A stretch of 64,000 bases of DNA from Penicillus capitatus (GCA_965649825.1 OZ287708.1:329411-393410); one strand, 5' to 3'; positions 30,131 to 63,699 are shown, counted from the first letter of the stretch. Notes: generated by a model from the letters alone, not told the origin. Numbers and translations: made by a program.

Positions 30131-31777
30131 TTGATGCAACGTATGTCTTTTGCGTCAGAATCAAACACAATGGCACTATGTGTGGTGTTTACGTATCCCT
30201 ACTTCTAAGAACAGACAGTTTCCACAGGTTTTCGACCATTGTCGACTCTCTAATCGAAATACCTTGTACTTGCTGCCCGTTTCGCGTTCCTGCTTCTTTT
30301 CCACGTCAGTGATCGACTTGGCGTGCATCTGCAATCATCACTAGACACAGGCAAATAGACTTTTTCGTGCCGCGTCCGATTCAGAGATATTAGCTCCTGT
30401 TTCGTCTGGCATCATCCCCTTTGTCTCGTCTCGATTTGCCTGGCGAAACATCGAGGAGTGGACAGTCGCATTGTTTTGGCACCCCCGTTCGTCGCGAACA
30501 GACTCTCTCTCTCTCTCTCTCTCATCCGAAATCGTTTACCGTCTGCAGAGCGCGTCGTTTAATGTGTGTTCTCTCGCACTGTTTTCTGAAGACGCTTTGT
30601 TATCCGAATGCGTCTTTCGGACTCGATCCAACGCGTCGACGGTGGCATGCATCTCGGTGTTCAATGAGGAATGCCGCGTCACAGGTCCAAATGGCAGAGC
30701 CAAGAGCAGTCATTTCTACAGTGTCTGTCTTTCATGTATTCTACAGAGCATTTGCCGCACGAGAGAACATCGCCAGCTCTGACGACATCGTCCTAGAACG
30801 CCCCACGCACGTAGAGCACTCGGAGGTAGTTAGTCTTTCATTACAGAGATTTTCCAGAAGTGTATCCAAACAGAAAACAGACATTCTCCGTCACAGCCCT
30901 CATAGCCTCAGAACTCGCCAGATACTAGAACGGAACGGCATGGACGATTCCAACGAGGATGCAGCAGCATGCCATCCACTTCCAATGGTAATCCACCACT
31001 TTGGTGCGCTCTGCACGGTGGAACACGCCGAAAAGAAAGAAGGCGACGACATTAGATCGCGACTGGCTTCGACCGCGATCAACTGCGCCATCACGTAGGT
31101 TGCTCTCGAAACTGTCTGATCGATGGCTTCGCAGACAGAACAGCAATCTTGCACAGCAGCCACACAACGCGATAGAACTTCGCTAGTTGGAGCGAACGGC
31201 GTCTTCCAAGGCACTCACTCGACGCTATGCGCGAGCACGAACCGAAACGACGACTCCGCGGCCGTCTGGTTCTCGCAGGGCGTCGTTCGGTTCCGCCTTC
31301 CATGTTCGAGGGAGTTAGGACCAACGGCAACTCCTCAAACCGACTCGCGTTACACTGCGCAGATCGCTCTCTCGACGGTGTTTGCGACGGAAACGCCCGC
31401 AAGAGACGGCCGTCTAGACAAAGAGTCTTTGCCGCTCCTGCGAACGAGAACGCCCGCCTCATACCTCTGCCCGGGCAACGCGGAGCTGGCTCGAGCGGTT
31501 GGCTGTTGGGAGAATCGCGTCTGAGAGGCCGTAGAGAACGCATGCGGTTACACTCAGAGAGGTCCATGCCGAACAAACTGTAAAGAATTTCCTCTGTAAA
31601 ACACTCTGCAAAGCGTCCAGAAGCGCTCTTTCGTTCGCGTCGCGCATCCAGACGACAGCATCCTGCGTTTCCGGACATCTGGCGGCCGTTTCTTTGTCCG
31701 GCGGCGCATGCATGCGCCGCCAACGGTCACAGTTCCCAACCGCCACCCGCAGGCCGCGCCCGGCAACCGAAGCGGTC

Positions 31778-31783
31778 TATAAA
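31778..31783 (+). promoter_or_regulatory. TATA box (TATAAA) of Pro-rich gene P1; the same box is at 43804-43809 (P2) and 58202-58207 (P3)
   Basis: CTATAAAGGTCCTGTCACA is conserved about 85 nt upstream of the ATG in all three copies. Confidence 0.7.
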
Positions 31784-31861
31784 GGTCCTGTCACAAACCT
31801 TTCCGCACTGTCGAGTTTTCTGAACTCCTTCTGTTTTCTTCGAGCACAAGCAACGACGACA

Positions 31862-33207
31862 ATGGCCGACGCACACCTCACCGCCGAAGACGATTACGGC
31901 TATCCGGGAAGACCGTAAGTCCTCTGACCATGTTTCAACGCGCCGCGCGCTACGGACCTCTGCGACTGCGGCCAGGACGCCTTTCATGTGCTGGCATGCG
32001 TCCGGCTGCAGTCGAAACGTCGGCGGCTACTTGCTTTCGAGAATGCGCAGCCATCCTGTTCTTCGGGACATCTCTAACTAACCTTTGTGTGTTTTTTAGA
32101 TTCGACCAGGTGACCTTGCCGGAGGTCTTGGGAAGTCATCCGCCCAGGGCCTTCATGGGTATGGACCTGGCCGCGAGAGAGCAGTGGTTTTGGGCTCTGA
32201 GGGGCCAACAGCTCCCCGAGGAGCAGGCCCCTCCTGTGCGGGTTGGTCCCAATAGGGACCAACCCGCACGGCCGCGGCCCGGTCGGCGGGCAAGGAGGAT
32301 CTCCGCCGAGGAGAGGAGAGCGCGGCTGGCCCAAGAGGGCCAGCCTGCTGCACAGCCACCACCGGCACGCCGTCCATCACCGCCGCCTGCAGTTTCTGAG
32401 CCGCCGACATCATCACCGCCTGGCCCACATCCGGCATCGTCGCCGCCAACCGAGACGCCAGTAGCTCCTACTCAGGCCCAGCCGGCCTCGCAGCCGCCAG
32501 CAGTACCCCAGCCGTTCCCGCCGCCGCCCATGCAGTGGTCGCCAGTGCCACCAGCGGCTCATCAACATGCCCAGCCGAGCACGCCGCCGCCTCAGGCCTG
32601 CCAGTCGAGCGCACCGCCGCCTCAGGCCTGCCAGTCGAGCGCACCGCCGCCTCAGGCCTGCCAGTCGAGCGCACCGCCGCCAATGGAGTGGTCACCAGTA
32701 CCGCCAGCGGCGCATCCTCATGCCCAACCCGCCGCACCGACTCCGGCATCATCGCAGCCCCCGTGTCCGGCTGCCATGGAGTGGTCATCCGGTCCCTTTC
32801 CGCAGCCGACCCCGACCATGTCCCCTCCCTCCCTGCAGCCTACCAAGCCTCCACTTTTTCCCCCTCGCCCCCAGGTATTTTGCATCCCAGCTTCCCCGCC
32901 CCCGGTCATCCCCTCACGGCCTCTAAAGTACTCACTCCCCTTTTGCCCACCTTTTCCTACGCGCACTTCTGTCTTCTCCCTACGCTCTTATCCACCCCCA
33001 ATCCCCCCACGCCCATTTATCTTCTCCGTCGGCCCGCTCGGTATCCCTCCCCGGCCGTATTTTCTCTCAGGCCAGTGTGTGACGGTGGGCCCAGCCATAC
33101 CAGAGCGACTCTTCTTCCTATCGGGACAATGTGTAAGTTACTCTTCAGTTCCATCCCTCTTTTGATGTGTTTTTGTGTAGGTTTTCATTGAAGATTGGTC
33201 AGTCTGA
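31862..33207 (+). CDS. Orphan proline-rich protein P1 (370 aa); exons 31862-31914, 32100-33132, 33181-33207
   Basis: Splice sites are conserved across three paralogs and the spliced length is divisible by 3. MADAHLTAEDDYGYPGRP|FDQVTL...LSGQC|VFIEDWSV*; internal 30-bp x3 repeat (APPPQACQSS) at 32581-32680. Confidence 0.85.
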
Positions 33208-33625
33208 GGGCCTTTTTCTGCAATTTTTTGAGCTGTTTTCTTTCTCGACAACAAAATTAAAAAAAACAAAAAAAACTGATATGGCTGTTTTCGTTCCTTG
33301 TTGTTTCTGCCATGCCACCTTCGCTTTGTTGTGGATGGCTCTGCGTTAGCAGTTTTTACATAGAGGCTGTCAAAAGCTCATTTGCTGTTTTGCTTTCCCG
33401 GAGGCTAAAGTGTCCTAAACTGCTGTCTTGCTGCCTGGAGATTGCCATGTCCGACTTTGCTGTCTAGCCGTGGATGAAATCTGCCATGTTTCTACTTGAT
33501 GTTTCTTTTGTGAAGAGGCCTGTGGTCGTCTTATTTTCTGTTTTGCTCTACTGAGGTGTTTTTGTCCCAATCTGCTGTTTTGCTTTCGGAGACCTCAGTG
33601 TCCTATAACCTGTTTAGCTGCCCGG

Positions 33626-34460
33626 GCTATGCCGTGTGACTGTCTAGCTGCTGCCGTCTGCCGCCCGGAGGATGCCTTGACTGTCTACCTGCTGCCGTCT
33701 GCCGTCTGCCGCCCGGAGCATGCCTTGACTGTCTACCTGCTGCCGTCTGCCGTCTACCGCCCGGAGGATGCCTTGACTGTCTACCTGCTGCTGTTTGCTA
33801 CTGGAGGCCGTGACTATCTACCTGCTGCCGTCTGCCGCCCGGAGGAAGCCGTGACTGTCTAGCTGCTGCCGTCTGCCGCCCGGAGGAAGCCGTGACTGTC
33901 TAGCTGCTGCCGTCTGCCGCCCGGAGGATGCCGCCCGGAGGAAGCCGTGACTGTCTAGCTGCTGCCGTCTGCCGCCCGGAGGATGCCGCCCGGAGGAAGC
34001 CGTGACTGTCTAGCTGCTGCCGTCTGCCGCCCGGAGGATGCCTTGACTGTCTACCTGCTGCCGTCTGCCGTCTGCCGCCCGGAGGATGCCTTGACTGTCT
34101 ACCTGCTGCCGTCTGCCGTCTACCGCCCGGAGGATGCCTTGACTGTCTACCTGCTGCTGTTTGCTACTGGAGGCCGTGACTGTCTACCTGCTGCCGTCTG
34201 CCGACCGAAGGATGCCGCCCGGAGGATGCCGTGACTGTCTACCTGCTGCCGTCTGCCGCCCGGAGGATGCCGCCCGGAGGATGCCGTGACTGTCTACCTG
34301 CTGCCGTCTGCCGACCAGAGGATGATGCCGTGACTGTCTACCTGCTGCCGTCTGCCGTCTGCCGCCCGGAGGATGCCTTGACTGTCTACCTGTTGCTGTC
34401 TGCTGCCTGAAGGATGATGCCGTGACTATGTACCTGCTGCCGTCTGCTGCCCGAATGAAT
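33626..34460. repeat. Minisatellite family 1, about 41-48-bp units (GCCGTGACTGTCTACCTGCTGCCGTCTGCCGCCCGGAGGAT)
   Basis: About 17 variant units read directly; related units recur at 45890-46030. Confidence 0.92.
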
Positions 34461-34649
34461 GATGCCTCCTTGACTATGTACCTGCTGCTTGGTGTAGATG
34501 GAGGCCGCCGCCGTTCAATTTCCTTCCTCGCTGCCCGAACAATCACACGTGTGGCACCGCTACCTGGAGGCCACAGTCGTTCGATCCGCTGCCTTTGTGT
34601 GGATGGAGGCCGCAGTCGATCTACATGCTGCCTTGCAGATCATTGAAGG

Positions 34650-37600
34650 CGACCGCCACACTACTTGCCGCCTTGCCGTGATTGCGAGGCGGCGGTCGTA
34701 AAACCTGCGGCCTCGCTGACCGGGGTCACAGTCGTAAAACCTGCGGCCTCGCTGACTGGGGTCGCAGTCGTCCACTTGCCACCTTGCCCTGGATGCAAGG
34801 CGGCTGGCTACCTACCTACCGCCTGCCGCCTGGAGAACGAAGTCGCTCTAGCTGCCGCCTTGTCGTGGATGCGAGGCGGCAGTCGCCATATCTGTCGATT
34901 GCCACCTGGAGGAAGAGGTCGTCCTACTTGCCGCCTCTTTGTAAATGCGAGGCGGCTGTCGCACAAGCAGCGACCTGGATTCCCAGATGCCGCAGTCGTC
35001 CTACTCGCCGCCTTGCCGTGGATGCGAGGCGGCTGTCGCCAAACCTGCGACCTGGATGCCCGAAGGCCGCAGACACAATGCCTGCCGCTGCCGCCCAGAG
35101 AACGAAGTCGCCCTACTTGCCGTCTCGCCATGGATGCGAGGCGGCTGTCGACTTACTTGCCGCTGCCGACCAGAGATGAAGTCGCACTACCTGCCGCCTT
35201 GCCTGACACCTGGATGCCGAAGTCGTCCAACTCGCCGCCTCGTCGTGGATGCGAGGCGGCGGACGCCTTACCTGCCGCTGCCGACCAGAGATGAAGTCGC
35301 ACTGCCTGCCGCCTTGCCGTGGATGCAAGGCGGCTGTCGCCCTGCCTGACACCTGGATTCCTCAGTCGTCCAACTAAACCGCCTTGCTCTGGATGCGAGG
35401 CGACTGTCGCCACTACCTGCTGCCTTGAAGACAACTCGAGGCAGCAGTCGACCTACTTGCCGCAGACGCAATACCTGCCGCCTCGTCGTGGATGCGAAGC
35501 GGCTGTCGCCCTGCCTGACGCCTGGATGCCGAAGTCGTCCAACTCGCCGCCTCGTCGTGGATGCGAGGCGGCGGACGCCTTACCTGCTGCCTTGCAGATC
35601 ATTGAAGGCGACCGCCACACTACTTGCCGCCTTGCCGTGATTGCGAGGCGGCGGTCGTAAAACCTGCGGCCTCGCTGACCGGGGTCACAGTCGTAAAACC
35701 TGCGGCCTCGCTGACTGGGGTCGCAGTCGTCCACTTGCCACCTTGCCCTGGATGCAAGGCGGCTGGCTACCTACCTACCGCCTGCCGCCTGGAGAACGAA
35801 GTCGCTCTAGCTGCCGCCTTGTCGTGGATGCGAGGCGGCAGTCGCCATATCTGTCGATTGCCACCTGGAGGAAGAGGTCGTCCTACTTGCCGCCTCTTTG
35901 TGAATGCGAGGCGGCTGTCGCACAAGCAGCGACCTGGATTCCCAGATGCCGCAGTCGTCCTACTCGCCGCCTTGCCGTGGATGCGAGGCGGCTGTCGCCA
36001 AACCTGCGACCTGGATGCCCGAAGGCCGCAGACACAATACCTGCCGCTGCCGCCCAGAGAACGAAGTCGCCCTACTTGCCGTCTCGCCATGGATGCGAGG
36101 CGGCTGTCGACTTACTTGCCGCTGCCGACCAGAGATGAAGTCGCACTACCTGCCGCCTTGCCGTAGATGCAAGGCGGCTGTCGCCCTGCCTGACACCTGG
36201 ATGCCGAAGTCGTCCAACTCGCCGCCTCGTCGTGGATGCGAGGCGGCGGACGCCTAACCTGCCGCTGCCGACCAGAGATGAAGTCGCAATACCTGCCGCC
36301 TCGTCGTGGATGCGAGGCGGCGGACGCCCTGCCTGACACCTGGATGCCGAAGTCGTCCAACTCGCCGCCTCGTCGTGGATGCGAGGCGGCGGACGCCTTA
36401 CCTGCTGCCTTGAAGACAACTCGAGGCAGCAGTCGACCTACTTGCCGCAGACGCAATACCTGCCGCCTCGTCGTGGATGCGAGGCGGCGGACGCCCTGCC
36501 TGACACCTGGATGCCGAAGTCGTCCAACTCGCCGCCTCGTCGTGGATGCGAGGCGGCGGACGCCTTACCTGCTGCCTTGAAGACAACTCGAGGCAGCAGT
36601 CGACCTACTTGCCGCAGACGCAATACCTGCCGCCTCGTCGTGGATGCGAGGCGGCGGACGCCCTGCCTGACACCTGGATGCCGAAGTCGTCCAACTCGCC
36701 GCCTCGTCGTGGATGCGAGGCGGCGGACGCCTTACCTGCTGCCTTGAAGACAACTCGAGGCAGCAGTCGACCTACTTGCCGCAGACGCAATACCTGCCGC
36801 CTCGTCGTGGAGCGAGGCGGCGGACGCCTTACCTGCTGCCTTGATGACAACTCGAGGCAGCAGTCGACCTACTTGCCGAAGACATCTTACCTGCCGCCTC
36901 GCCGTGGATGCGAGGCGGCTGTCGCCCTGCCTGACGCCTGGATGCCGAAGTCGTCCTACTCGCCGCCTCGCCGTGGATGCGCGGCGGCGGACGCCTTACC
37001 TGCTGCCTTGAAGACAACTCGAGGCAGCAGTCGACCTACTTGCCGCAGACGCAATACCTGCCGCCTCGTCGTGGATGCGAGGCGGCGGACGCCTTACCTG
37101 CTGCCTTGATGACAACTCGAGGCAGCAGTCGACCTACTTGCCGAAGACATCTTACCTGCCGCCTCGCCGTGGATGCGAGGCGGCTGTCGCCCTGCCTGAC
37201 GCCTGGATGCCGAAGTCGTCCAACTCGCCGCCTCGTCGTGGATGCGAGGCGGCTGTCGCCCTGCCTGACGCCAGGATGCCGAAGTCGTCCTACTCGCCGC
37301 CTCGCCGCCTCGCCGTGGATGCGAGGCGGCTGTCGCCTTACCTGACGCCAGGATGCCTGGATGGCCGCAGACGCAATACCTGCCGCCTCGCCGTGAATGA
37401 GAGTCGGCTGTCGCCAAAACTGCGACCTTGATGCCCGGGGTCGCAGTCTTCCACTTGCCGCCTTGTTCTGGATGCAAGGCGGCTGTCGCACTATTAGCGA
37501 CCTGGATTTCGGGCTGCTACAGTCGTCCTACCTTCCGTCTGCCGCTGCCGCCCAGAGGACGAAGTCGTCCTACTCGCCGCCTTGCCGTGGATGCGAGGCG

Positions 37601-37700
37601 ACTGTCGCCTTACCTGCTGCCATGGAGTTCATTGGTGGCCGCAGACGCAATACCTGCCGCCTCGCCGTGGATGCGAGGCGGCTCTCGTCTTACCTGCCGC
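34650..37700. repeat. Minisatellite family 2: about 35 stem-loops GCCGCCTYG-N9-CRAGGCGGC with reused linkers and higher-order repeats
   Basis: Hairpins spaced about 70-115 bp apart; 959-bp-offset duplication (34626-35202 vs 35585-36161); 167-bp units at 36357, 36524 and 36691. Confidence 0.95.
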
Positions 37701-39796
37701 ATTGACGATCTTTGGAGACCGAAGTCGCCGACTTTAAGTTCTCTTTTCATGAAATTGCACTTTCTTACTCTTTCTCTGCAGACTTTGTTGCGGGGTGTAT
37801 CTTATCCTTCGCGAACCACTGTTTTATCGATTTTGCGCTTGAGATCACACTTTTTAAAAAAGAATGACCTTTTTACAAGCGTTTTGAACAATTGAAATCC
37901 GTTCTTTTAACATTTATCGAGCGCGAGTTACGATTCGACAACGGAACGCTGTATGTCGACGCCTTCCCGTCCATTGCCGAGGGCGTTGTTCAGGCGCGTT
38001 AAATCGTGAAGCTCGTTACCATCTGCTGTGGGAAGACGCATGGCATCCACAGACCTGTTTCCTGCATTCGCTTCCTAGGGACAGGCGAAGATGACGCGAC
38101 GTCTACTTCGTGCATGCACCGTCGACCCAGGTTTCGAAACTCGGCAAGCACGTCGCACTGTGCGACCGCGATGAATTGCCTTACCCTATCGTGTGTTGCG
38201 CTACTGCCTGTCTGCAACATCACGGCTACAAGCTTCCGTCCGATGGGCTTGCACTCGAGTGCCTTGTGTCGGTGTCGTTCAGTGCCCGAAAGCTTGGAAG
38301 CGTGCCTGCGGATGAGAATCGACTTGTGGCGGCTGTGTCGATGAAGTGGCGATAGGAGAGCGAGGGAAGAGAGCCTCGTCGGTATGCATCACTCTAAAGA
38401 AGTGGCGACTCGCCCTTTCTGTTTACGGATCTATTCGAAACGACACGTTTCGGGCGATGTCCGATATGGCGACAGCATTATCGCCAGAAGCAAAAAGGTA
38501 GCTGCACGTTGTCGACTGACGGCGGCGTGCTCCGAAGGGAGGAGCGCCAGACGAACGATTGTCTCTTCGAAGTTGTTTACACGATGTATCGTCTAAGATT
38601 CTGGGCGCACTCCTTCCGTTGTCTGAGGAGCGGAGTGCATTAAATTCCGTGCAGTCGGTTGCCCGGACAGAGAAGACTATGCGCATCGTCACGACGAAGG
38701 CGTCGTTTTCGTTTCATCGCCTTGGCGGCTCCGCAGTTTAAGCGAAGAACGACAGAGGAGGAACACGGAAGGCTTCGACGAAAGCCGAACAGATACAAGA
38801 ACAGCGTGAACTCTGGAGAGGCTAGAGTCGCGAAGCCGTCGACGCAACGCTCACAGGAACGCGTGTTCGACAGTTCAGATGGCGTCAACTGACTGGAGCT
38901 GTACCATTCGACGCGACCAGCGACAGCTCCAATGCTCCATATTCAAGGCGCGTCTTGCCGATTTGGACGACTCGCCCTTTCGCTGGTCCGCGTTGCTCGT
39001 GTTCGGTGGACCCTTTAACGAGGCCTCGCCTTTCAAGTTCTCGGACAACGACATCAAGATCTACGCGTCTCCGCGTGTCGCTCGTTCGATTTCGAGTAGA
39101 TCGTCGGAATGGCATCCGACCGCTCGTCAAGTGGAGACGCCTGTCCGAACGCCGATGTCGCCGCCGCGGGAAAAAGATCTCGGCATTGCGCGCGTGTACA
39201 AAGCGACCTTCGCCCTTTGTCGGAAAGTCAGAGACCAGAAATGAGAATCAAACAACATCCCCCAAGACGATGCAGAGTGGATCATCCTCGTAAGCCTGGG
39301 TGAATCTCGCCTCCTGAGCTGAATGTGTTTGCATCATCATCCTCGGGAACTGTTAAAGTCCCTTTGGAACACGGACGTTTCCGAATCCGCCTCATCGTGC
39401 GCGACAGGAATGCCGGCCACTTCAGCGCAGTACAGGGAAATGATTGCGGTGTGAGCGGTGAATGAAAGGAAAGAGCGTCAAGACGGCGCGCGAGCTTGCG
39501 GCGACGGAAGTGCTGAGCGTTCAGGACGTCTGAAGGCAATAGGACCGCGATGACTCCTCGAAGAGAGACCTCTGCAAATCGTGTGGTCTGTTTCTGCTCG
39601 GAAGTTCTGTCGAGACGCCTCTAACGAGCTCCTCGGTGCGAATCTCCAAGCGAATCGACGTCCACTTATGAGGAGCTCCAGGTAGGTGTATAGGCATCGT
39701 TGCCCGACGACAACATAGACGGTCGGTTCACGGCATCTTGTGACGCGCGTCCCTAGACGGAGGCAGTGTTCATTCGGTGTCCAAGTGGAGCAAAGG

Positions 39797-39960
39797 ATGC
39801 ATGCGTTTTGTTTTACGTATCTCTATGCGGTGCTGCTAGCGTTGGGCGGATTCATCGGTTTAGCTACCGAAGGCAGGAATGGCTCGCTCGGAGGCGGTGT
39901 GGGTTCTGGCGCCGTGCACAATCTTCCTGCGCACACCAGTCTGCTCTGCTACGTGCCGGG
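39797..39960 (+). pseudogene. TMEM14/FAX (fatty-acid export)-like N-terminal fragment
   Basis: MHAFCFTYLYAVLLALGGFIGLATEGRNGSLGGGVGSG resembles plant TMEM14 MHDFCFTIPYG..GG.IG...GS..SL.GG; the homology is lost afterwards. Confidence 0.6.
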
Positions 39961-42900
39961 AGGCAGTGGAAGACAGGAACAGTCGGCAGAGAAATCGACA
40001 CCAGCCACGCCATCGGCAAGTCTTGCACGACACGCTCACCGCGATCGATCTATCCAAGCTGCCGTCGACGAGCGAGACGAACGCTCCCGCACCGAGTGCG
40101 CCTGAGCCGACAGGTAAAGTATGGTACAAGGAGATCGCTCGTGTACCATCTGGACACACTATGCAGAACTGAGCCGCAATGGAAGAGAACGGGCTGGAAG
40201 TTCTAATGGCGCCGTCGTTTGCACAAGGCGTGTACGCGTCGACACGCCACCGGCTATAGAGTAGATGAATGATCGGTCTCGGCGTTCCACGCACTGGGGC
40301 AAACGGAATGCGCAACAGCTCCCCTTTCTTGCATCTCTTTCGTCGCGACATTACGCATATGGTCTTCCATCGAGATGCGCAACGTTAGAGGCAGCAAACG
40401 CTTTCGGCGACCGATCACAGATCCGCCTGACTGTAGCAGACGTTTCCACTCGAGTAAGGGCAATTCGCACGCTGGCTTCGCATCGAACAAATCTGTGTCT
40501 GTATCAGCATGACAAAGACCAAAGAAAAAGGTAACAAAACAGGCTGGCGACTGAAGAAATGTTGATCACGAGGTCGAATGGGATGCCACACACATTTCGC
40601 ACTCTTCCCGCGCACAAGCGACTGTCCGACACATCTCGACTTCTAACACAGTGTTCGATGAAATCCTGCTGCCAGTCGTGTTAGTCGGTCCGCGACCAAG
40701 CACGCCGCCAACCAGAACCTCAGAACCGCTAGGGCACTGCACAGGTAAACGAATACGGCGACTCCACCTTGCGTCTCTGGCAGATCTCTCACCAGTTTGG
40801 CGGCACTTCTTCCCCGTGTCTTCGTTCGCCGCTGAAGCGCGACGAGCTCGAGTTTAACGAAGCGCTGCGGCAATATGGACTAAGTGGGATGTGGTTCCTT
40901 TGCCATCACCACCTCTAGGCCTTTCGCTGCGTTTCTGTCCTGTCGCCTTCCCCGCAGCACGATCTCTAAACGCTCGGGATATCTGTCCGTCTTTCCTCTG
41001 TCGTTTGGATGGCGGCTTGGAAGTCATCGTCTACATTTCATGCGACTGAGCGGCACCGAGACAGAAAACGAGACCGTTGCGCAGCGACCCTATAAGGCAA
41101 CCATCGGCACGCCGCCGCAGACCGATCCGTTGCTTCCCTACGGTCCGCTCTCCGAACCGAACTACTGCTAAGGTCGTCTGTGGTGCTGCAGATGGCGTCT
41201 CTACGCGATGCAGGAGGTTCCAGACGGACTGCCATCCGCTCGAGGAAGCCGAAATGAGAACACCGCTGGATGCAGGCGAGGTCGGACGAGTCTACGTCGC
41301 CCAGGAACGCAAACCCAGATCCGTCCGTCTTCACCTCAAGGCGGTCCATAGAAGAGATCTCCGTCTTCTTAGTGTGTCTGTGCCACTTTCAGCGAACAAA
41401 CAAACATCACATGGCGGCGGCAATATACAGGGCCGAGTGACAGACGCGACGTGCGGCGGAGATCAAGTCGAGATTGAAGCTCTTACACATATCGCCCAGC
41501 TCTACACGCAGATCACACTCCCCAGTAGACCTACCGCAGGATCTGCAATGTCGACAATTGCTTCCAGCAGGAGCCCAAAGTCAATGTGGACGCCACGATC
41601 CGAGATCGAAAGTGCGTTCCTCCCGCGAGATGTGCGGATATCGATCAATACCTGTCCAGCTTCTACGCAGGAACGGCGAAGAGAGAATCCAGCTCGAACG
41701 GGTCTTCGACCACCCGCGGGTCGAGAGACATGCGGATCCCTCGCGGCGGCTGCGACTCAAGGGTATCTCTAGGGCTGAGAGAGCATCGACCGGCTTGAAT
41801 TCATCGAAGACACGTGGATGCAGTCCCGACGTCGGTGGTCCGTTGCACCGAGACAAGAACGAAACGTTTTTTGTCTTGTAACAAGTTTTGTTAAGGGTAC
41901 TAGTGTCCGTCAGCAGACAGCGCCTTCGGTCGTTGCTCAATCGGCCTCGTCGGTTGGCGGGGTTCCTGACGTCAGAGACGTCCACCATCCAGGAGGCCTC
42001 TCGGCGTTGTACCTCTGCAACAGCTCGTCGATGTCTACGGAGTCTTGTCGAGTGACCCCCATCGCTCGCGGCAGCTTCGTCGTCCCTTGCTGTCTCTGAC
42101 GAACGACGCATCGGTTCCACCGAAGAATGGGCTGCGTACGAAGGATGCTGTGGAGCAGACGCATCCACCAGGTGAGTCGAGTGACCGGCAGGGACGTCAG
42201 AGCAGAGCACAGGGGAAACGCCTGACTGGTGAGCAGCGCCGTCGTGAAACGCCACCTTTCTTCGCCGTCCTTGCTTCCGAGGCTATCTGAGGATACCTGC
42301 TGGACTGAGATGCCCCTCGCTGTCGGAGACCGAATCGTCTGATGCTTCACCGTCCGCGTTTCTTGCCAGACGATCTGTGGCTCTGTCCTCCGTCGAGGCA
42401 TCTCTTGCATCACGTCTTCGGTCTCTGCAATCAGGTCAGCGGCCTTTGCGAATTCAAACACTAGATCTTCGTCCGCGCCGTCGTTGTCTGTCTTCTAAAA
42501 CACGTATTCAACGATACCGCAGTCGGGACCGACAGTCGACGAATCTTCCATAAGTGCCATAACTATCTCGTCGTGCTGTGCGATTGCGACGGTGAATGCA
42601 TGTGCCTTTCGACACGAGTCGTCGTTCCGTGTGAGCAAACACTATTACAAGGCGTTCGATCTCAATAGAAGTGCGACGAGGCCAAATCTCTCTCCGCCAA
42701 AAGCGTCGAATCCAGCATACAGCCGCAGGGCTCCCTGAGAAACACACCTCTAGTAACTCTGTCGACAGCGTCTTTCGCCACCTGACAACGCATCGTCGCT
42801 TGAGGCCATCGCTCCCGGAAGACGACAGCACATGCAAGATGCCAGAGAATCTTCCTCCGAAGACGGCTGCCGGTCCGAGCACTGCGACACCGACTGCGGT

Positions 42901-45182: not shown

Positions 45183-45569
45183 GTTTTTCTAGCTGTCATC
45201 TTGGGGGTAAAAATTTAAAAAAAAACAAAAGTTTTTATTTTCTTCTGTCACATCTCACATTTTTTATGTGAGATGTCTGAAAAACTTAAAGAACAAAAAA
45301 AAAACAAAAGGGGCTGTTTTCGTTGTTTTGATGTCTCTGCCATTCCACCTTCGCTCTGTTGTGGTTGGCTGTGTGTTACATATATTTGCCTGGAGGCTGG
45401 TGTGTCCTGCGTGCTGTTTTGATGTCATCGGAGGCTGGAGGCTGGGTTATTTACCTGATGTCATTGGAGGCTGTAGGCTGGTGTATACTGTCTCATGTCA
45501 TCGGAGGCTGAATAGCTGGATATTTTACCTGATGTCATTGGAGGCTGTAGGCTGGATATTTTACCTGAT

Positions 45570-45880: not shown

Positions 45881-46029
45881 TGATACCTCCGTGACTGTCT
45901 AGCTGCTGATGTTTGCTACTGGAGGACGCCGTGACTATGTACCTGCTGCCTGCTGCCGACCGGAGGATGCCTTGACTGCCTACCTGCTGCCGTCGGCCGC
46001 CCGGAGGATGCCTTGACTGCCTACCTGCT

Positions 46030-46782: not shown

Positions 46783-46949
46783 TGCTGATGATGGCTTTCT
46801 CTGCGTTTGGATGCCTGCGTAGGCGTCCCTACCTGATCATTCGCTGCTAATGGAGGCAGCCATAGGCTACCAGCCCGACCGCTCTGGCTGCCAGTGGAGG
46901 CAGTAATCAGCGGTTTACCTTTTGCTCTGGCCGTCACTAGAAGCAGTCT

Positions 46950-52325: not shown

Positions 52326-52356
52326 GATTTTGCATCGTGATAGGAATAGGGAAAGA

Positions 52357-53646: not shown

Positions 53647-53905
53647 GATGCCTTTGCAGATTCACCTACCCGTTGTCCGATTCAAACTCGAGCCATCCCG
53701 TTCAACATCTACAGGCCACTCAGTCGAGAAGGGAACGGCTTGGGGATAATACGTGGACGATCGATGCAACATTCTTAGCAATCATGCTTTAGAACAGCTT
53801 CACATTCGGTCGCGTCGCAGATGACGATCCCTTAAGTCTTTGATCGTTCTATCAGGCGAATAAAACACAATCGAACCATCCAGTCGTTGGACTGTTCGTC
53901 ACCGG

Positions 53906-55314
53906 ATGCGGATTTCAAGTTTCGTGCCCGGCATACGAAGAGTGCTGCGGCCGTTTTTGAAGACGACACGCGCGTTTTCGATTGTCACGCACGATGGCAA
54001 CTTTCACTGTGACGAAGCCTTAGCCGTGTGGATGCTGAAGCAGACAGCACGATTTCGGGATTCTCCCGTCATCCGAACACGAGATCCTTCACTCGTTGAA
54101 AAGGCGGACGTCACCGTCGACGTCGGGGATATCTACGACCCAGGTTGCTCGATTCAACGTCACCCACTGGCCTGATACAGACGCGTTGATTGATAGACAC
54201 CCTTCGATTCGACCATCACCAGCCGGGTTTCGAAGAGTACTTCGATTCGAGTAAGTTCTGATGCCGTCTCCACGAAGGAGATGACGAACGAATCATTTCA
54301 GATAGACGCCGCATTCAGTTATCGAGCTGCGGACTCGTGTACAAACACTTTGGTATGCCTGGCTACGTGATGTTCGTCGAATACAGAGACGAGAGCGTGT
54401 TTCTGCATCAGGAAGAGAAGTGATTTCTGAAATCGCGAAGGACTTTGAACTGACAGGCGAGGAGATGGAAACACTTTACCAAAGAGTCTATGCAGCATTC
54501 ATCGAGGCCATCGATGCCATGGATAACGGTGCAGATTGCTCTGTTCTATGCTTTGTCTGAGGAGGACTGCCGTGATAGGTTACCCTGAATGTGTCACGGA
54601 TACTTATCGAATGCGTAAAGCTTGCAAGACCTTCAGCGATTGCACAGGGTTGACTGCCAGAGTTCGAAGGATGAATGTTCACTGGCGATCGCCTCCTGAT
54701 GTCACATCCGATGGTCAGTTCCAGAAGGCGGTGGAGTTGTGTGGCAAAGAGTTTGCGGAATTCGTTCTCTACAGAGCTTATGTTCGTCCATCTTTCTAGA
54801 CGAGACCCCTCCCTGCCGACAGTTTGTTTTCTAGAAATACATTCCGGCACGAAGATACGTGCAACGTGCCCTGGAGACCATCTACGACGTTAGCAAACAG
54901 GGCGATATTATGTTGTTGGAGATCGGGTGTCCATGGAACAGATTCCTTCATGAACTCGAGTCTCAGATTCTGAGGCACAACCAAGTCAAGTACTGCGTTT
55001 ATACTGGCGTAAGCAAGCCAACAGTTTCTCTGACGAGCTTCCCAGAGAGGTGACGTGTCCAGGAAGAGGAAAACAGTGACTATCGAGTTCATGCCGTTAC
55101 CGTTAACCCCGATTCGAATACGCCTCGTCTTGGGTTCCCCGACGAATGGAGAGGGTTGAGTGGAGAGAAGCTCGAACGCGTGACCGGAATCGAAGGTAGC
55201 TCCTTTGTGCATCGAGGAGGATATATTGGAAGGAATCGCACAAAGGAGGGTGCCATCGCCATGGCCCGAAAGTCCATAGAGATTGCAAGAGGAAAGAGAT
55301 TTGTCACCGGTTGA
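53906..55314 (+). CDS. MYG1: MYG1-family exoribonuclease, paralog B2, apparently intact
   Basis: All B1 motifs and splice sites are retained; the TGA at 55051-55053 lies inside an intron. Confidence 0.85.
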
Positions 55315-56310
55315 TCATGAACGTCATTGATCGTCCGTCAGCTGCCTCGACGAATCTCGATCTTTCGATTTTGCGTTGTGTCAGACGGAGACTGTGTTTG
55401 TGAGTCTTCTTATCGGCGATGAGCAAACTCGAAACCAGGACTGCACTAATGGAGTCGTTTTCGTGAATTTGACAGTTCAAAACAGGCACACGGCCACGAC
55501 TTCACACACACCAACATCTTTCTTAAATACCCAGGCAATCATTACGGTCTTCACAGAACACTGTCTAATGGTAATTGGCTCGACTCTCTCCCGCTGCATC
55601 ACATTCATGTCTCTTCGAAGTTTCACAGAGATTTGGCCAAATGGCCATTCCTTGGCGGAGAGTATAAGTACTAATGTGGAAACTGGAGTTCACATTTTAG
55701 CTTCTGCTTCCTGGAAAATCGGGAGTTCTGCATCACAGAAGGTTCTTCGAATCAACTGCGGTCGGTTGAATTTAAATGTCGACGAGAACATCCGACTGAC
55801 TCATCGAATGGACGATAAGCTTATCTGAGAACTTTTTGCGTCGCAAGAGTAGCAAGTCTGTTTCCACGTGTCCTTCAGATAGACGTTGTGGGTTCTGTCA
55901 ACAGGTTACTGAACATGCAACCCAACTTTTGGACGAAGAGCTGCCCGTTGGAGGACCGTCCGCATCGGAATGTGGTGGTAGACCTTACCTGCCGGATCTC
56001 GATATCCAAGAAAGAAAACGGGCGAAGTTTTGCGTGCCCTCGCATTGAAACATGACATCTTCAATACCGAGTCGCTTGTCGCAGCATGCAACGCTACGAC
56101 GAATAAAAATGAACGAAACATTCCTCTTGGATGGTTAAGGAGATTTGGCGAAAGAAGTCGTCATGGATGTCTCAAACCTGATGCTGTCTTCGAATTCGCA
56201 GAAGTGGCCAAAATCGCACCTGTTCTCGAACAAGATGCGGATTCTCTGAGAGAACTGGTGTGTGTCCTCCGTTCAAGAATCATCATGCAGACACGCTGCA
56301 ATGCGCCGAG

Positions 56311-56560
56311 TTGGATGCTGCCAAGACAGTCAGTTCACAAGGTGAGGTGGCTATTGCAGAGAGCAAATGTGATGGGACATTCGTGTGGTGGCTGGTCTTC
56401 ACGGATTCGCGTCTTCGCTGATGGATCTGGACTTTGCACCAGCAGGACGTGAATTTGTAGCCGATGGCTTTGATCGGATGGCTGAGACTGTTCGAGAAAG
56501 AGCAGCAGGAAGAAGAGATGTCTACTTCATTCCTCGCATGTCACGACGGTCTTCCTGCTG
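56311..56560 (+). pseudogene. DCAF13/SOF1-like fragment, copy 2
   Basis: MDLDFAPAGREFVADGFDR; the splice acceptor TTCAG of copy A is TTCAC here. Confidence 0.62.
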
Positions 56561-58287
56561 TTCCGGTCTTGATGCAAGCAACGTATGTCTTTTGCGTCAG
56601 AATCAAACGCAATGGCACCGTGTGCCGTGTTTACGTATCCCGACTTTTAAGAACAGACAGTTTCCACAGGTTTTCGACCATTGTCGACTCTTTAATCGAA
56701 ATACCTTGTACTTGCTGCCCGTTTCGCGTTCCTGCTTCTTTTCCACGTCAGTGATCGACTTGGCGTGCATCTGCAATCATCACTAAACATAGGCAAATAG
56801 GCTTTTTCGTGCCGCGTCCGATTCAGAGATATTAGCTCCTGTTTCGTCTGGCATCATCCCCTTTGTCTCGTCTCGATTTGCCTGGCGAAACATCTAGGAG
56901 TGGACAGTCGCATTGTTTTGGCACCCTTGTTCATCGCGAACAAACTCTCTCATCCGAAATCGTTTTCGCGTCTACAGAGCGCATCGTTTAATGTGTGTTC
57001 TCTCGCACTGTTTTCTGAAGATGCCTTGTTGTGCGAATGTCTTTCGGACTCGATCCAACGCGTCGACGGTGGCATGCATCTCGGTGTTCAATGAGGAATG
57101 CCGCGTCACAGGTCCAAATGGCAGAGCCACGAGCAGGCATTTCTACAGTGTCTGTCTTTCACGCGTTCCACGGAGCATTTGCCGCACGAGAGAACATCGC
57201 CAGCGCTGACGACATCTCCTGGAACGCCCCACGCATGCAAAACACTCGGAGGTAGTTAGTCTTTCATTACAGACATTTTCCAGAAGTGTCTCAGAACGGA
57301 AAAACAGACATTCTCCGTCACAGCCCTCATAGCCTCAGAACTCGCCAGACACTAGAACGGAACGGCATGGACGATTCCAACGCAGATGCAGCAGCATGCC
57401 ATCCACTTCCAATGGTAATCCACCACTTTGGTGCGCTCTGCACGGTGGAATACGCCGGAAAGAAAGAAGGCGATGACATTGGATCGCGACTGGCTTCGAC
57501 CGCGATCAACTGCGCCATCACGCAGGTTGCTCTCGAAACTGTCTGATCGATGGCTTCGCAGACAGAACAGCAATCTTGCACAGCAGCCACACAACGCGAT
57601 AGAACTTCGCTAGTTGGAGCGAACGGCGTCTTCCAAAGCACTCACTCAACGCTATGCGCGAGCACGAACCGAACGACGACTCCGCGGCCGTCTGGTTCTC
57701 GCAGGGCGTCGTTCGGTTCCGCCTTCCATGTTCGAGGGAGTTAGGACCAACGACAACCCCTCAAACCGATACGCGTTACACCGCGCAGAACGCTCTGCCG
57801 ACGGCGTTTGCGACGGAGACGCCCGAAAAAGACGGCCGTCCAGACGCAGAGTCCGTGCCGATCATGCGAACGAGAGAGACCGCCGCTTTCCTCTGCCCAG
57901 GCAACGCGGAGCTGAGCCGGGCGGTTTGCCGTTCGGAGATCCGCGTCGGAACAGCCGCAGAGAACGCATGCGCGTTACACTCAGAGCGGAACATGCCGAC
58001 AAACTGTAAAGAACTTTGACTGTAATACACTTCGCAAAGCTTCCAGAAGCGCACTCCCTTTTGCGTCGCGCATCCGACGACAGTGCTCTGCGTTTCTGAA
58101 CGTCTGGCAGCCGATCGTTTGTCCAGCGGCGCATGCAGCGCCGCCGAACGGCCACGGTTCCCAGCCGCCACCCGCAGGTCGCGCTCGGCAACCGACGCGG
58201 CTATAAAGGTCCTGTCACAGACCCTTCCGCACTGTCGACTTTCCTTGGCGCCTTCCTGTTTTCCGGAGTTCAAGCAAAGACGAAGAT

Positions 58288-59467
58288 ATGGCCGAAGCAC
58301 GCATGTTCACAGAAGACGACTACGGATATCCTGACAGACCGTGAGTCCTGTGGCCATTCGTCGACGCGTCGCGCGCTACGGAGCCTTTCGACTGCGGCTG
58401 GACACTCTCCATGAACACGCATGCGTCCGGCTGCAGTCGAGAAGCTCTGCAGCGCGCGACGCGTCGACGAACTCTTCTTCGACTGATCTCTAACTCTTCT
58501 GTGTGTTCTTAGATTTGACCAGGTGACGTTGAGGGAGGTCCTGGGCAGTCACCCGCCCAGGGCCTTCGAAGGCTTGGACGAGGCCGCGCGTGTGCAGTTG
58601 TATTGGGACCTAAAATCCCGAACAACTGCACAGAGGGGTCAAGCGCACATCGATGCGCAGACCCCTCCTGTGCGGTTTGGACCCAATAGGGTCCAAACCC
58701 CACAGCCGCGGCCTGTGCGGCGGGCGAGGGTCCTGTCCTCAGAGGACAGGAGAGCGCGACTGGCCCAACAGGGCCAGCCTGCCGCTCCGCCGCCTCCAGC
58801 GCGCCCCGCTCCGCCGCCGCCTGCAGTCTCAGAGCCACTGCCGTGCCAACATCCGGCATCACCAGCGCCAGCGCCAGCCGAGACTCCTCAGGCCCAGCCG
58901 GCCTCGCCGCCAGCAGCACCCCAGCCGAGCGCGCCTCTGCCGATGGATTGGTCGCCAGTGCCGCCGGCAGCTTATTCTCAGGCCCAGTCAGCCGCACCGA
59001 CTCAAGCATCATCGCAGCCACCGTGTCCAACTGTCATGGAGTGGTCATCCTGTCCCTCTCCTCAGCCGACCCCGACAATGCCCGCTTCCGTCACCCAGTC
59101 CATCAAGCCTCCACCTTTCCCCCCTCGCCCACAGGTGTTTTGCATCCCAGCGTCCCCGCCTCCACTTATCCCCTCGCGCCTGTTTAAGTTTTCATTCCCC
59201 TTTTTCCCACCTTCCTTTCCTGTACGCACCTCCCAGTTTTCCTTACCCTGCCCCCCTCCAATCCCACCACGCCCCTTTGTCTTTTCCGTCGGGCCCCTCG
59301 GTATCCCTCCCAGACCGTATTTCCTCTCCGGCCAGTGTGTGCCCATCGGTCCTGCCATTCCAGAACGGCTTTTCTTTCTATCAGGCGAATGTGTAAGTTA
59401 CTCTGCATTTCCTTCTCTCTTTCAATGTGTTTTTCTGTAGGTTTTCATTGAAGATTGGTCTCTCTGA
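58288..59467 (+). CDS. Orphan proline-rich protein P3 (319 aa); exons 58288-58340, 58513-59392, 59441-59467; mosaic of P2 (5') and P1 (3')
   Basis: Intact spliced frame MAEARMFTEDDYGYPDRP|FDQVTL...LSGEC|VFIEDWSL*. Confidence 0.85.
58357..58471 (+). ncRNA. Intronic inverted repeat (pre-miRNA-like hairpin) in P3 intron 1
   Basis: The right arm is identical to that of P2; left-arm changes give two G-U pairs and one A-C mismatch; the stem is extended by a terminal TTC/GAA. Confidence 0.45.
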
Positions 59468-59869
59468 GGGCCTGTTTGTTTAGTTTTTTGAACGCTGTTT
59501 TCTTTTTTGAAAGAAAAATATAAAAAGAAACAAAGATCTGAAAGGGCTGTTTTCGTTTCTTGCTGTTTCTGCCATTCCACCTCCGCTTTGTAGTGGATGG
59601 TTGTGTGTTTTCTGTTTTTACATAGAGGCTGTCAAGGGCCCATCTGCTGTTTTGTTTGCTCGGAGGCTGAAGTGTCCTAACCTGCTGTCTTGATGCGATC
59701 AAAGGCCTGGAGGCTGTCATAGATGTTCTATTTACTGCTTGTTGTCATTGGAGTGCGCCATGGATGTTCTACCTGCCGCTATTGCTGTCTTGCTGGAGGC
59801 CTTCGTAAATCATCTACATGATCTCTTGCTGCTGCTGCTGCTGCTGCTGCTGGAGAACTTCTCTTGCCG

Positions 59870-61600
59870 CGTGGAGGCAGTCGTTTTCGAACTACCTGAT
59901 GCCTGGAGGCTGTGTGGAGGCCGTCTTTTTCGAACTACCTGATCTCTGGAGGCTGTGTGGAGGCCGTCTTTTTCGAACTACCTGATCTCTGGAGGCTGCG
60001 TGGAGGTCGTCTTTTTCGAGCTACCTGATCTCTGGAGGCTGCGTGGAGGTCGTCTTTTTCGAGCTACCTGATCTCTGGAGGCTGCGTGGAGGCTTTCTTT
60101 TTCGAACTACATGATGCCTGGCGGCTGCATGGAGGCCGTCGTGTCCGTCTCACCTGATCTCTGGCGGCTGCATAGAGGCCGTCGTTTCTGAACTACATGA
60201 TGCCTGGCGGCTGCATGATTCCGTCATCAGCGTTCTACCTGATCTCTGGCGGCTGCATAGAGGCCGTCGTGTCCGTCTCACCTGATCTCTGGCGGCTGCG
60301 TGGAGGCTGTCTTTTTCGAACTACATGATGCCTGGCGGCTGCATGGAGGCCGTCGTGTCCGTCTCACCTGATCTCTGGCGGCTGCGTGAAGGCCGTCATC
60401 AGCGTTCTACCTGATCTCTGGCGGCTGCATAGAGGCCGTCGTTTCTGAACTACATGATGCCTGGCGGCTGCATGGAGGCCGTCGTTTCTGAACTACATGA
60501 TGCCTGGCGGCTGCATGGAGGCCGTCTTTTCCGAACTACCTGATGCATGGCGGCTGCATGAGACCGTCGTGTCCGTCTCACCTGATCTCTGGCGGCTGCG
60601 TGAAGGCTGTCTTTTTCGAACTACATGATGCCTGGCGGCTGCATGGAGGCCGTCGTGTCCGTCTCACCTGATCTCTGGCGGCTGCGTGGAGGCTGTCTTT
60701 TTCGAACTACATGATGCCTGGCGGCTGCATGGAGGCCGTCTTTTCCGAACTACCTGATGCATGGCAGCTGCATGAGACCGTCGTGTCCGTCTCACCTGAT
60801 CTCTGGCGGCTGCGTGAAGGCTGTCTTTTTCGAACTACATGATGCCTGGCGGCTGCATGGAGGCCGTCGTGTCCGTCTCACTTGATCTCTGGCGGCTGCA
60901 TGGAGGCCGTCTTTTTCGAACTTCATGATGCCTGGCGGCTACATGAGACCGTCGTGTCCGTCTCACCTGATCTCTGGCGGCTGCGTGGAGGCTTTCTTTT
61001 TCGAACTACATGATGCCTGGCGGCTGCATGGAGGCCGTCGTGTCCGTCTCACCTGATCTCTGGCGGCTGCGTGGAGGCTTTCTTTTTCGAACTACATGAT
61101 GCCTGGCGGCTGCATGGAGGCCGTCGTGTCCGTCTCACCTGATCTCTGGCGGCTGCGTGAAGGCTGTCTTTTTCGAACTACATGATGCCTGGCGGCTACA
61201 TGAGGCCGTCTTTTTCGAACTACCTGATGCCTGGCGGCTGCATGAGGCCGTCTTTTTCGAACTACCTGATGCCTGGCGGCTGCATGAGGCCGTCGTTTCT
61301 GAACTACCTGATGCCTGGCGGCTGCATGAGGCCGTCATCGGCGTCCTACCTGATCTTTGGCCGCGTGGAGGCCGTCGTGGCGGCGTCCTACCTGACGTCT
61401 GGCGGCGGCGGAAAGGCTGTCTTAAGCGTCCTTCCTGATCTCCTGCTGCTACTGGAGGCCTTCACAGCGAATGAAGGCCGTCGTGGCGGCGTCCTACCTG
61501 ACGTCTGGCGGCGGCGGAAAGGCCGTCTTAAGCGTCCTTCCTGATTTCTGGCGGCTGCATGAGGCCGTCTTTTCCGAACTACCTGATCTCTGGTGGCTGC
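59870..61600. repeat. Minisatellite family 4, about 43-bp monomers often as an 86-bp dimer (CTACATGATGCCTGGCGGCTGCATGGAGGCCGTC../CTCACCTGATCTCTGGCGGCTGCGTGGAGGCTGTC..)
   Basis: 86-bp period at 60621 and 60707; about 38 monomers; the array ends with one family-2 hairpin at about 61611-61637. Confidence 0.95.
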
Positions 61601-63699
61601 CGGCTTACTTGCCGCCTTGCTGTGGACGCAAGGCGGCTGTCGCCGACTTTAAGTTCTCTTTTCATGAAATTGCACTTTCTTACTCTTTCTCTGCAGACTT
61701 TGTTGCGGGGTGTATCTTATCCTTCGCGAACCACTGTTTTATCGATTTTGCGCTTGAGATCGCACTTTTTAAAAAAGAATGACCTTTTTACAAGCGTTTT
61801 GAACAATTGAAATCCGTTCTTTTAACATTTATCGAGCGCGAGTTACGATTCGCCGACGGAACGCTGTATGTCGACGCCTTCCCGTCCATTGCCGAAGGCG
61901 TTGTTCTGGCGCGTTACATCTTGAAGCTCGTTACCATCTGCTGGGGAAGACGCATGGCATCCACAGACCTGTTTCCTGCATTCGCTTCCTAGGGACAGGC
62001 GAAGATGACGCGACGTTTACTCCGTGCATGCACCGTCGACCCAGGCTTCGAAACTCGGCAAGCACGTCGCACTGTGCGACTGCGATGAATTGCCTAACCC
62101 TATCGTGTGTTGCGCTACTGCCTGTCTGCAACACCTCGGCTACAAGCTTCCGTCCGATAGGCTTGCACTCGAGTGCCTTGTGTCGGTGTCGTTCAGTGCC
62201 CGAAAGCTTGGAAGCGTGCCTGCGGATGAGAATCGACTTGTGGCGGCTGTGTCGATGAAGTGGCGATAGGAGAGCGAGGGACGAGAGCCTCGTCGGTATG
62301 CATGACTCTAAAGCAGTGGCGACTCGCATTTTCTGTTTACGGATCTATTCGAAACGACACGTTTCGGGCGGTGTCCGATATGGCGACAGCATTATCGCCA
62401 GAAGCAAAAAAAGTCGCTGCACGTTGTCGACTGGCGGCGGCGTGCTCCGAAGAGAGGAGCGCCAGACGAACGATTGTCTCTTCGAAGTTGTTTACAAGAT
62501 GTATCGTTTAAGATTCTGGGCGAACTCCTTTCGTTGTCTGAGGAGAGGAGTGCATTACATTCCGTGCAGTCGGTTGCCCGGGACAGAGAAGACTATGCGC
62601 ATCGTCACGACGAAGGCGTCGTTTTCGTTTCATCGCCTTGGCGGCTCCGCAGTTTAAGCGAAGAACGACAGAGGAGGAACGCGGAAGGCTTCGACGAAAG
62701 CCGAACAGATACAAGAACAGCGTGAACTCTGGAGAGGCTAGAGTCGCGAAGCCGTCGACGCAACGCTCACAGGAACGCGTGTTCGACAGTTCAGATGGCG
62801 TCAACTGACTGGAGCTGTACCATTCGACGCAACCAGCGACAGCTCCAATGCTCCATATTCAAGGCGCGTCTTGCCGATTTGGACGACCCGCCCTTTCGCC
62901 GGTCCGCGTTGCTCGTGTTCGGTGGACCCTTTAACGAGGCCTCGCCTTTCAAGTTCTCGGACAACGACATCAAGATCTACGCGTCTCCGCGTGTCGCTCG
63001 TTCGATTTCGAGTAGATCGTCGGAATTGCATCTGACCGCTCGTCAATTGGAGACGCCTGTCCGAACGCCGATGTCGCCGCCGCGGGAAAAAGATCTCGGC
63101 ATTGCGCGCGTGTACAAAGCGACCTTCGCCCTTTGTCGGAACGTCAGAGACCAGAAGTGAGAATCAAACAACATCCGAAGACGATGAAGAGTGGATCATC
63201 CTCGTGAGCCTGGGGGAATCTCGCCTCCTGAGCTGAATGTGTTTGCATCATCCTCCTCGGGAACTGCCAAAATCCTTTTGGAACACGGACGTTTCCGAAT
63301 CTGCCTCATCGTGCGCGACAAGAATGCAGGCCACTTCAGCGCAGTACAGGGAAATGATTGCGGTGTGAGCGGTGGATGAAGGGAAAGAGCGTCAACACGG
63401 CGCGCGAGCTTGCGGCGACGGAAGTGCTGAGCGTTCAGGACGTCCGAAGGCAATAGGACCGCGAGGACTCCTCGAAGAGAGACCTCTGCAAGCCGTGTTT
63501 CTGCTCGAGAGTTCTGTCGAGACGCCTCTAACGAGCTCCTCGGTGCGAATCTCGCAGCAGATCGACGTCCACCGATGAGGAGTTCGAGGCGTACCGGCAT
63601 CGTTGCCCGACAACAACATAGACGGTCGGTTTACGGCATCTTGTGACGCGTGTCCCTAGACGGAGGCAGCGTTCAATCGGTGTCCAAGTGGAGCAAAGG

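Follow-up and report, generated by a model that had tools for sequence, protein, structure and literature searches.

In Jeffreys-type minisatellite families, arrays share a core sequence, and in the Plasmodium var-type architecture, paralogues have a common 5′ flank, the intron bears a conserved element, and the coding core varies. The VSG genes of Trypanosoma brucei are flanked by 70-bp repeats (PMC4858185). Further comparison can be drawn with the proline-rich or hydroxyproline-rich (extensin-type) proteins of plants and algae (PMC4769139), and also with tandemly or segmentally duplicated gene families that undergo concerted evolution. Here, we analyzed a stretch of 64,000 nucleotides of DNA from Penicillus capitatus (OZ287708.1:329411–393410; hereafter the window, in which positions are counted from the first letter), in which an initial annotation, made from the sequence alone, had pointed out a three-copy module of a proline-rich gene and a downstream repeat array. 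We assign a probability of about 0.6 to the reading that the module represents a lineage-specific, expanding, and recombining multigene family of a chlorophyte green alga, each copy of which inherits its 3′ minisatellite. The family is real yet fairly ordinary, and it is no new kind of system.

Comparison between this family and the described systems revealed that (i) it shares with the families under concerted evolution the paralogues in segmental duplications, the mosaics with conversion tracts, the purifying selection on functional domains, and the length-variable repetitive middle, but it additionally keeps a constrained noncoding 5′ block of ~0.66 kb across genomes and, at every copy of one clade, a large shared-core 3′ minisatellite; (ii) its arrays resemble Jeffreys-type minisatellites in having units of 41–315 bp with differing sequences, a short G-rich core (TGGAGGC or CTGGCGGC-N3-4-TGGAGGCCGTC), and fast turnover, but every one of them accompanies a single gene family, has a fixed strand relative to the gene, and is derived from the 3′-flank repeat of that family; (iii) as with the VSG 70-bp repeats, an array is linked to each member of a variable family and breakpoints coincide with conserved flanking sequence, but the VSG repeats are upstream and the arrays here are downstream, with no expression site, telomeric context, or surface protein (no telomeric repeats were found); (iv) its proteins are, like those of the extensin type, proline-rich products of a multigene family with repetitive length-variable regions, but they have neither a signal peptide nor many Ser-Pro(3–5) repeats (about two SPPP motifs per protein) nor a Pfam match, and their conserved N-domain and PxxPxR C-domain are unrelated to extensins; and (v) the conserved 5′ flank, intron element, and variable coding core of the var type are also found in this family, but the protein is unrelated and has no transmembrane (TM) segment or export signal.

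Self-BLAST of the window revealed three homologous cassettes at about 31.2–37.7, 43.2–49.5, and 57.6–61.6 kb (copies 1, 2, and 3), each of which consists of a conserved noncoding 5′ block, a three-exon gene, and a 3′ minisatellite of 1.7–4 kb. The homology of copy 1 spans positions 31167–33434 and that of copy 3 positions 57594–59696, both within a larger segmental duplication; the copy 2 span (43192–44488) is 89% identical to copy 3 and 79% identical to copy 1. All three cassettes are on the plus strand. The three-exon models with shared splice phases that were initially proposed were reproduced exactly, giving proteins of 370, 354, and 319 aa for copies 1, 2, and 3, respectively. The copy 1 gene includes exon 1 (31862–31914; MADAHLTAEDDYGYPGRP, phase 2), intron 1 (31915–32099), exon 2 (32100–33132), which encodes the N-domain, the Pro-rich variable middle, and the C-terminal PxxPxR repeat domain, and exon 3 (33181–33207; VFIEDWSV*), which is preceded by an intron of 48 nt. 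The copy 2 gene (43890–45182) has its exons at 43890–43942, 44120–45086, and 45138–45182, and the copy 3 gene (58288–59467), which is a mosaic, has its exons at 58288–58340, 58513–59392, and 59441–59467. The introns of all three copies are of the GT..AG type and have identical phases.

Thirteen relatives came from a word-based search of 5.8 billion proteins and 24 from an exhaustive search of 1.84 billion representatives with a hidden Markov model profile; all are singleton open reading frames (ORFs) in ENA metagenome-type assemblies. Relatives were traced to loci (labeled L001, L002, and so on) in assemblies ERZ25074695 and ERZ26696514. The window is 70–92% identical to these loci, that is to say, its genome is related to theirs yet different. 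Exon 1 (M..EDDYGYPGKP followed by GTRAGT) is kept in 11 of 12 copies from three genomes, including a distant one. Before splicing, the ORF of every relative reads ..GQC-VS.., so that GTRAGT, the donor of intron 2, follows the same codon everywhere, and an exon 3 ending in ..IEDWS* is found in copies 1 and 3 and, after splicing of intron 2, in P0002 and P0006. The gene for aspartokinase–homoserine dehydrogenase (AK-HSDH) adjoins one relative, and its closest named matches are from Raphidocelis (64%) and Ulva (61%), followed by Elliptochloris (59%) and Edaphochlamys (57%). Since these nearest named homologs (57–64%) are all green algae, the lineage is that of a poorly sampled chlorophyte green alga, in line with the algal origin first supposed. 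For an NSUN2 neighbor, the best match from a named source is 49% identical. The family contigs of ERZ25074695 differ in coverage (36–41× for L001 and L002, 9× for L003, and 7× for L127), and their loci also differ in divergence from the window, which points to a sample containing several related strains or species of alga.

As judged from the pattern of substitutions, the gene is protein-coding and purifying selection acts on it, which was the view of the initial annotation. The pairwise ratio of nonsynonymous to synonymous divergence (dN/dS) is 0.23–0.27 overall and 0.45–0.63 in the N-domain; in the C-domain it is 0.17, or dS is saturated. Within exon 1, variation is concentrated at third codon positions (0.32 versus 0.09–0.11 at first and second positions).

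The protein is 24–27% proline. The Pfam search returned no match, including none to a transposon-related family, and the PDB profile search was likewise empty, so that the protein still belongs to no recognizable family. It comprises a short acidic/aromatic peptide encoded by exon 1, a helical/basic N-domain of ~100 aa, a P/Q/S/A-rich middle of variable length that bears two to three M(E/D)WS motifs, and a C-domain with five to six repeats of the PxxPxR type. Residues 1–25 have a mean hydropathy of −0.66 to −0.98, and the N-terminus (MADAHLTAEDDYGYP) is acidic. No TM or signal-like segment was found in the three copies, in which the highest Kyte–Doolittle value of any 19-residue window is 1.1; the absence of both had been noted from the start. 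An AlphaFold2 model built with the family alignment has a predicted local distance difference test score of 56, with three short helices in the N-domain and the remainder as coil, a confidence too low for a fold search. The proline-rich protein is predicted to be mostly intrinsically disordered and intracellular, and it may act, through short linear motifs, as a scaffold or adaptor. In copy 1 only, a coding 30-bp minisatellite (32571–32681; 3.7 units, 96% matches) encodes PPPQACQSSA repeats and therefore contributes part of the length difference between copies.

The noncoding 5′ block spans positions 31129–31786 in copy 1 (658 bp), 43154–43812 in copy 2, and 57556–58210 in copy 3, and in all three it contains a TATAAA at −84/−86 (31778–31783, 43804–43809, and 58202–58207, respectively). 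The conserved upstream DNA with a TATAAA box that was described initially is thus a 658-bp block kept in 12 copies, of which 11 form the alignment and one (L008) was added by BLAST; BLAST also detects the block in L004. Over the 11 aligned copies, the block is 653–663 nt long with very few indels and a pairwise identity of 70–88%. It is conserved about as well as the first and second codon positions of the N-domain and better than the third; the 5′ untranslated region (UTR) just 3′ of the block is only 57–73% identical. The block contains GCGTTACAC twice, several GCATGC motifs, and a perfect palindrome, GGCGGCGC-ATGCA-GCGCCGCC (in copy 1, GGCGGCGCATGC(A)GCGCCGCC). It also carries a TGTAA that is invariant in all 12 copies and paired in most, at about −283/−267 from the ATG; the sites in the window are 31579–31599 (a pair at 31579 and 31595), 43621, and 58005–58025, and TGTAA is rare across the window (0.45 per kb). 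A coding function of the block was rejected: all six frames match equally in tBLASTn, codon periodicity is absent (0.124/0.119/0.119), and none of the frames stays open across the copies. A structured RNA was also rejected, given an unfavorable RNAalifold covariation term (+3.08), few compensatory pairs, and no Rfam match (nothing at the gathering threshold in the whole window and nothing at E ≤ 1 in 31000–34600). We infer that the block is a constrained cis-regulatory region, which would act as the promoter.

The arrays detected by Tandem Repeats Finder begin 429, 238, and 399 bp past the stop codons of copies 1, 2, and 3, respectively. The copy 1 array (33636–37705) has units of 41–55 bp at 33636–34490 and units of 69–77 bp with the hairpin GCCGCCTCGCCGTGGATGCGAGGCGGC at 34563–37705. 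Downstream of copy 2, the first two arrays (45420–46790) have 36/48-bp units (45420–46031) and 77-bp hairpin units (46100–46790), and the last two (46820–49487) have about 50 units of 42 bp (46820–49048) and units of 72 bp (49238–49487). The copy 3 array (59866–61600) has about 34 units of 43 bp (TGGAGGCCGTC...CTGGCGGCTGCA). Counting the three window copies, L001, L002, and two copies each in L003, L005, L006, and L127, a same-strand array of 0.3–4 kb that starts ~0.15–0.9 kb past the coding sequence (CDS) is present in 13 of 13 close-relative copies with a visible 3′ flank. The initial annotation had proposed that gene and array behave as one unit and had asked whether every genomic copy is followed by an array; the two do go together in these 13.

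The core TGGA[G/T]GC exceeds background in all 17 arrays (0.6–20 per kb versus 0.1 per kb). Most arrays have 5–20 cores per kb. In c1a, a copy 1 array, and in the arrays of 77-bp hairpin units, TGGAGGC reaches only 0.6–2.9 per kb, and the variant TGGATGC or GGAGGA is used. The reverse complement of the core is enriched in no array. The core extends to CTGGCGGC-N3-4-TGGAGGCCGTC or GCCGCCTCGCCGTGGATGCGAGGCGGC. The arrays, initially called locus-specific, therefore have one strand-specific core in common. They had also been described as stem-loop arrays, which is true of some and not of others: the folding z-scores range from −2.9 to +2.6 (−1.6 for c1b, about 0 for copy 3, and +2.6 for c1a), and stem-loop formation was rejected as a general property of the arrays. 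Coding repeats were rejected as well, because the unit lengths mix multiples and nonmultiples of 3. A scan of JGI metagenomes with the array core gave 118 single chance matches and no arrays and was uninformative.

Degenerate, AT-richer units are found from about 150 nt past the stop codon and merge gradually into the array. In the distant genome (L004 and L008), the same 3′ position holds only 2–4 units of 35–38 bp with the same core (TGCTG..GGAGGCTG), together with A-rich tracts accompanied by a TCACAC/GTGTGA hairpin; in L007, the most divergent member, the A-rich hairpin is all that is present. An ancestral 3′-flank repeat has therefore expanded into kilobase arrays in one clade, and these would have grown by slippage or unequal exchange from a short 35–45-bp repeat (TGCTG...GGAGGCTG). 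An array lies beside every copy because it is inherited along with the gene; the coupling of gene and array is most simply descent and does not require a dedicated "system". The arrays themselves are probably neutral. Of 13 copies, 7, the most divergent ones among them, have the A-rich tract with the TCACAC..GTGTGA hairpin ~170 nt past the CDS end (window 45248–45274; L004 ~11310–11370; L006 ~3385 and ~11175; L007 8770–8960; L005 ~20630); window copies 1 and 3 have lost it, and it may be an ancestral 3′-end element.

These 3′ flanks bear on the proposal that the arrays, located in or just past the 3′ UTR, act in cis, either as sites for RNA- or DNA-binding proteins or as a zone of termination or insulation between the gene and its neighbor TMEM14. 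We consider such a role doubtful. The gradation of degenerate units into the array, the strictly sense-strand core, and the ancestral A-rich hairpin element would agree with it, and since neither TGTAA nor AATAAA (candidate poly(A) signals) occurs within 700 nt past any family stop codon, the transcript may run into the array. Against it stand array lengths anywhere between about 0.1 and 4 kb and a highly variable unit sequence.

The segmental duplication that includes copies 1 and 3 pairs positions 25882–32574 with 52326–58987 at 92.5% identity (self-BLAST). Its left flank in segment A (25848–31322), which contains two MYG1 paralogues, matches 52300–57750 in segment A′ at about 97%, and its right flank (37724–40098) matches 61639–64000 at 95%, with TMEM14 exon 1 at 39797 and the A′ counterpart at 63700. 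Identity is 93–100% along these flanks (mean about 97%), falls sharply to 83% at 31323, inside the 5′ block, and recovers at 37724; in the interior, the gene retains 60–85% and the arrays cannot be aligned. Within copy 3, a 700-bp tract (58094–58793) that covers the core promoter, exon 1, the intron, and the N-domain matches copy 2 at 91–100% identity, and the remainder of the gene resembles copy 1; the N-domain dS of copy 3 is 0.064 against copy 2 versus 0.45 against copy 1. Locus L127 is collinear with window positions 35878–44480 (84% identity) and is thus the positional counterpart of copy 2; past 44480, it has a 3′ half of the copy 1/L003 type and a 77-bp hairpin array. The identity drop between A and A′, the copy 3 tract, and the L127 swap together indicate that ectopic exchange repeatedly replaced parts of the cassettes. 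As read from these alignments, the A/A′ and copy 3 mosaics show ectopic recombination or gene conversion between copies, and the exchange breakpoints are in the shared block, the gene, and the array. The same three cases bear out the earlier suggestion of a diversifying multigene family and identify it as a recombining one.

Described neutrally, as an orphan gene family with a linked minisatellite, the initial observation largely holds. The most economical account is a disordered proline-rich family with a strongly constrained promoter region and an inherited 3′ minisatellite. The family would have grown by tandem and segmental duplication of one unit, composed of a ~0.7-kb 5′ regulatory block with a TATA box, a three-exon gene with an intronic palindrome, and a 3′ flank. 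The 5′ block, the gene, and the arrays would then provide homology for ectopic recombination and gene conversion, and such exchange would turn copies into mosaics and swap the 3′ half of a gene along with its array.

The same mosaics could have been produced by a cassette-recombination system of the contingency type, in which the 5′ block and the 3′ array are kept as homology tracts for frequent exchange that diversifies or switches an expressed variant, much like the 70-bp repeats beside trypanosome VSG genes. Our analysis makes this unlikely. It would explain why the diverged interior breaks off within the 5′ block (31323) on one side and where the array ends distally (37724) on the other, and it is compatible with the 700-bp conversion tract between copies 2 and 3, with the 3′ half and array swapped in L127 at the orthologous copy 2 locus, and with the strand-specific core kept in all arrays. 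However, the mosaics seen are historical ones, no expression site, telomeric repeats, signal peptide, or TM segment was found, mosaic paralogues are commonplace in tandem gene families, the distant relatives retain the family with almost no array, and antigenic-type switching would serve no obvious need in an alga, free-living or symbiotic. It is improbable, too, that block and array are recombination handles by which gene cassettes, either a 3′ half with its array or a tract from promoter to N-domain, move among loci at an elevated and possibly regulated rate and give the alga a VSG-like diversity of intracellular proline-rich proteins, or, as a variant, that the basic N-domain binds the array core.

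Intron 1 contains an inner inverted repeat of ~13 bp around GCATGC in 12 of 12 copies (in copy 1, ..CGACTGCGGC.AGGACGC / GCGTCCGGCTGCAGTCG..). This inner stem is held almost wholly by sequence conservation, with a compensatory change at one pair only. A near-perfect hairpin of ~45 bp (z about −10) is limited to 3 of 12 introns, those of copy 2 (43943–44119), copy 3, and L005b, and is a derived inverted duplication; intron 1 of copy 1 has the short inner stem alone (z −2.1). The "hairpin intron" attributed to all three copies is hence correct for copies 2 and 3 and has to be withdrawn for copy 1. Small RNAs derived from the intron hairpin or from hairpin array units might silence or coordinate the family, which we regard as very doubtful. 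The ~45-bp hairpins, the inner stem common to all 12 introns, and the 10-bp-stem hairpins in some arrays would be candidate sources, but the long hairpin is derived and only some copies have it, sequence conservation accounts for the inner stem with its single compensatory pair, most arrays fold no better than shuffled sequence, and Rfam gave no match.

The gene order around the cassettes bears on a further proposal of the initial annotation, that of a nonautonomous mobile element, here one with a captured gene. In its favor, copies are located at three places on a 572-kb contig with unrelated neighbors. Between the module ends, however, no terminal inverted or direct repeats of at least 11 nt were found; the limits of upstream homology differ (650 to 2130 nt); the flanks past the arrays are common to nested subsets of copies, as in segmental duplication; no Pfam match is transposon-related; and synteny with TMEM14 is kept (window, L001, L003, L127, and L008), even in the distant genome. 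A mobile element is therefore highly improbable. The neighbors were mapped by tBLASTn with the ORFs of the relatives, and this showed that TMEM14 and MYG1, previously described as decayed, have an open first exon (TMEM14) and open pieces (MYG1) in both duplicated segments; the SOF1 and coiled-coil sequences were not located in this way.

Several points weigh against the preferred reading of a recombining family with a constrained promoter and neutral, inherited arrays. As a promoter, the 658-bp block would be long and poor in indels. TGTAA is the usual poly(A) signal of green algae, and its invariance means that part of the block could belong to an upstream noncoding transcript; if TGTAA acts as a poly(A) signal here, such a transcript may end inside the conserved block. 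The core is kept on one strand in otherwise unalignable units, and distant genomes also retain the repeat 3′ of the gene. Neither is predicted by pure neutrality, and together they hint that the arrays are under some constraint, e.g., as binding sites, as a zone of termination, or as a signal for recombination. Moreover, because the loci were found via the gene, these genomes could also hold arrays without a gene elsewhere.

If expressed, the family would represent an uncharacterized, fast-evolving class of disordered proline-rich proteins confined to an almost unsampled green-algal lineage. It offers a natural example of a short 3′-flank repeat that gave rise to kilobase minisatellites retaining a common core, and its arrays and conserved promoter block mark sites of recombination between paralogues. 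The ~0.66-kb noncoding block and the intronic palindrome are candidates for family-wide cis-regulation. No general concept is changed, and the main use of these results is in the annotation of these genomes.

Each duplicated segment includes two diverged MYG1-like genes (25799–28407 and 52309–54844). In the distant member L007, MYG1 lies about 4.5 kb downstream, which suggests an old synteny between the family and MYG1. Elsewhere in the window, the longest ORF with an ATG (12426–13979, plus strand) encodes 517 aa and has no significant Pfam match, and a perfect 35-bp tandem repeat of 2.7 units (10833–10926; 94 bp), unrelated to the array family, is the sole tandem repeat scoring >100 outside the modules. 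The region between TMEM14 and copy 2 (40375–43110) is 87–89% identical to L003 and L127 versus ~76% in its surroundings, and it therefore probably contains a conserved gene.

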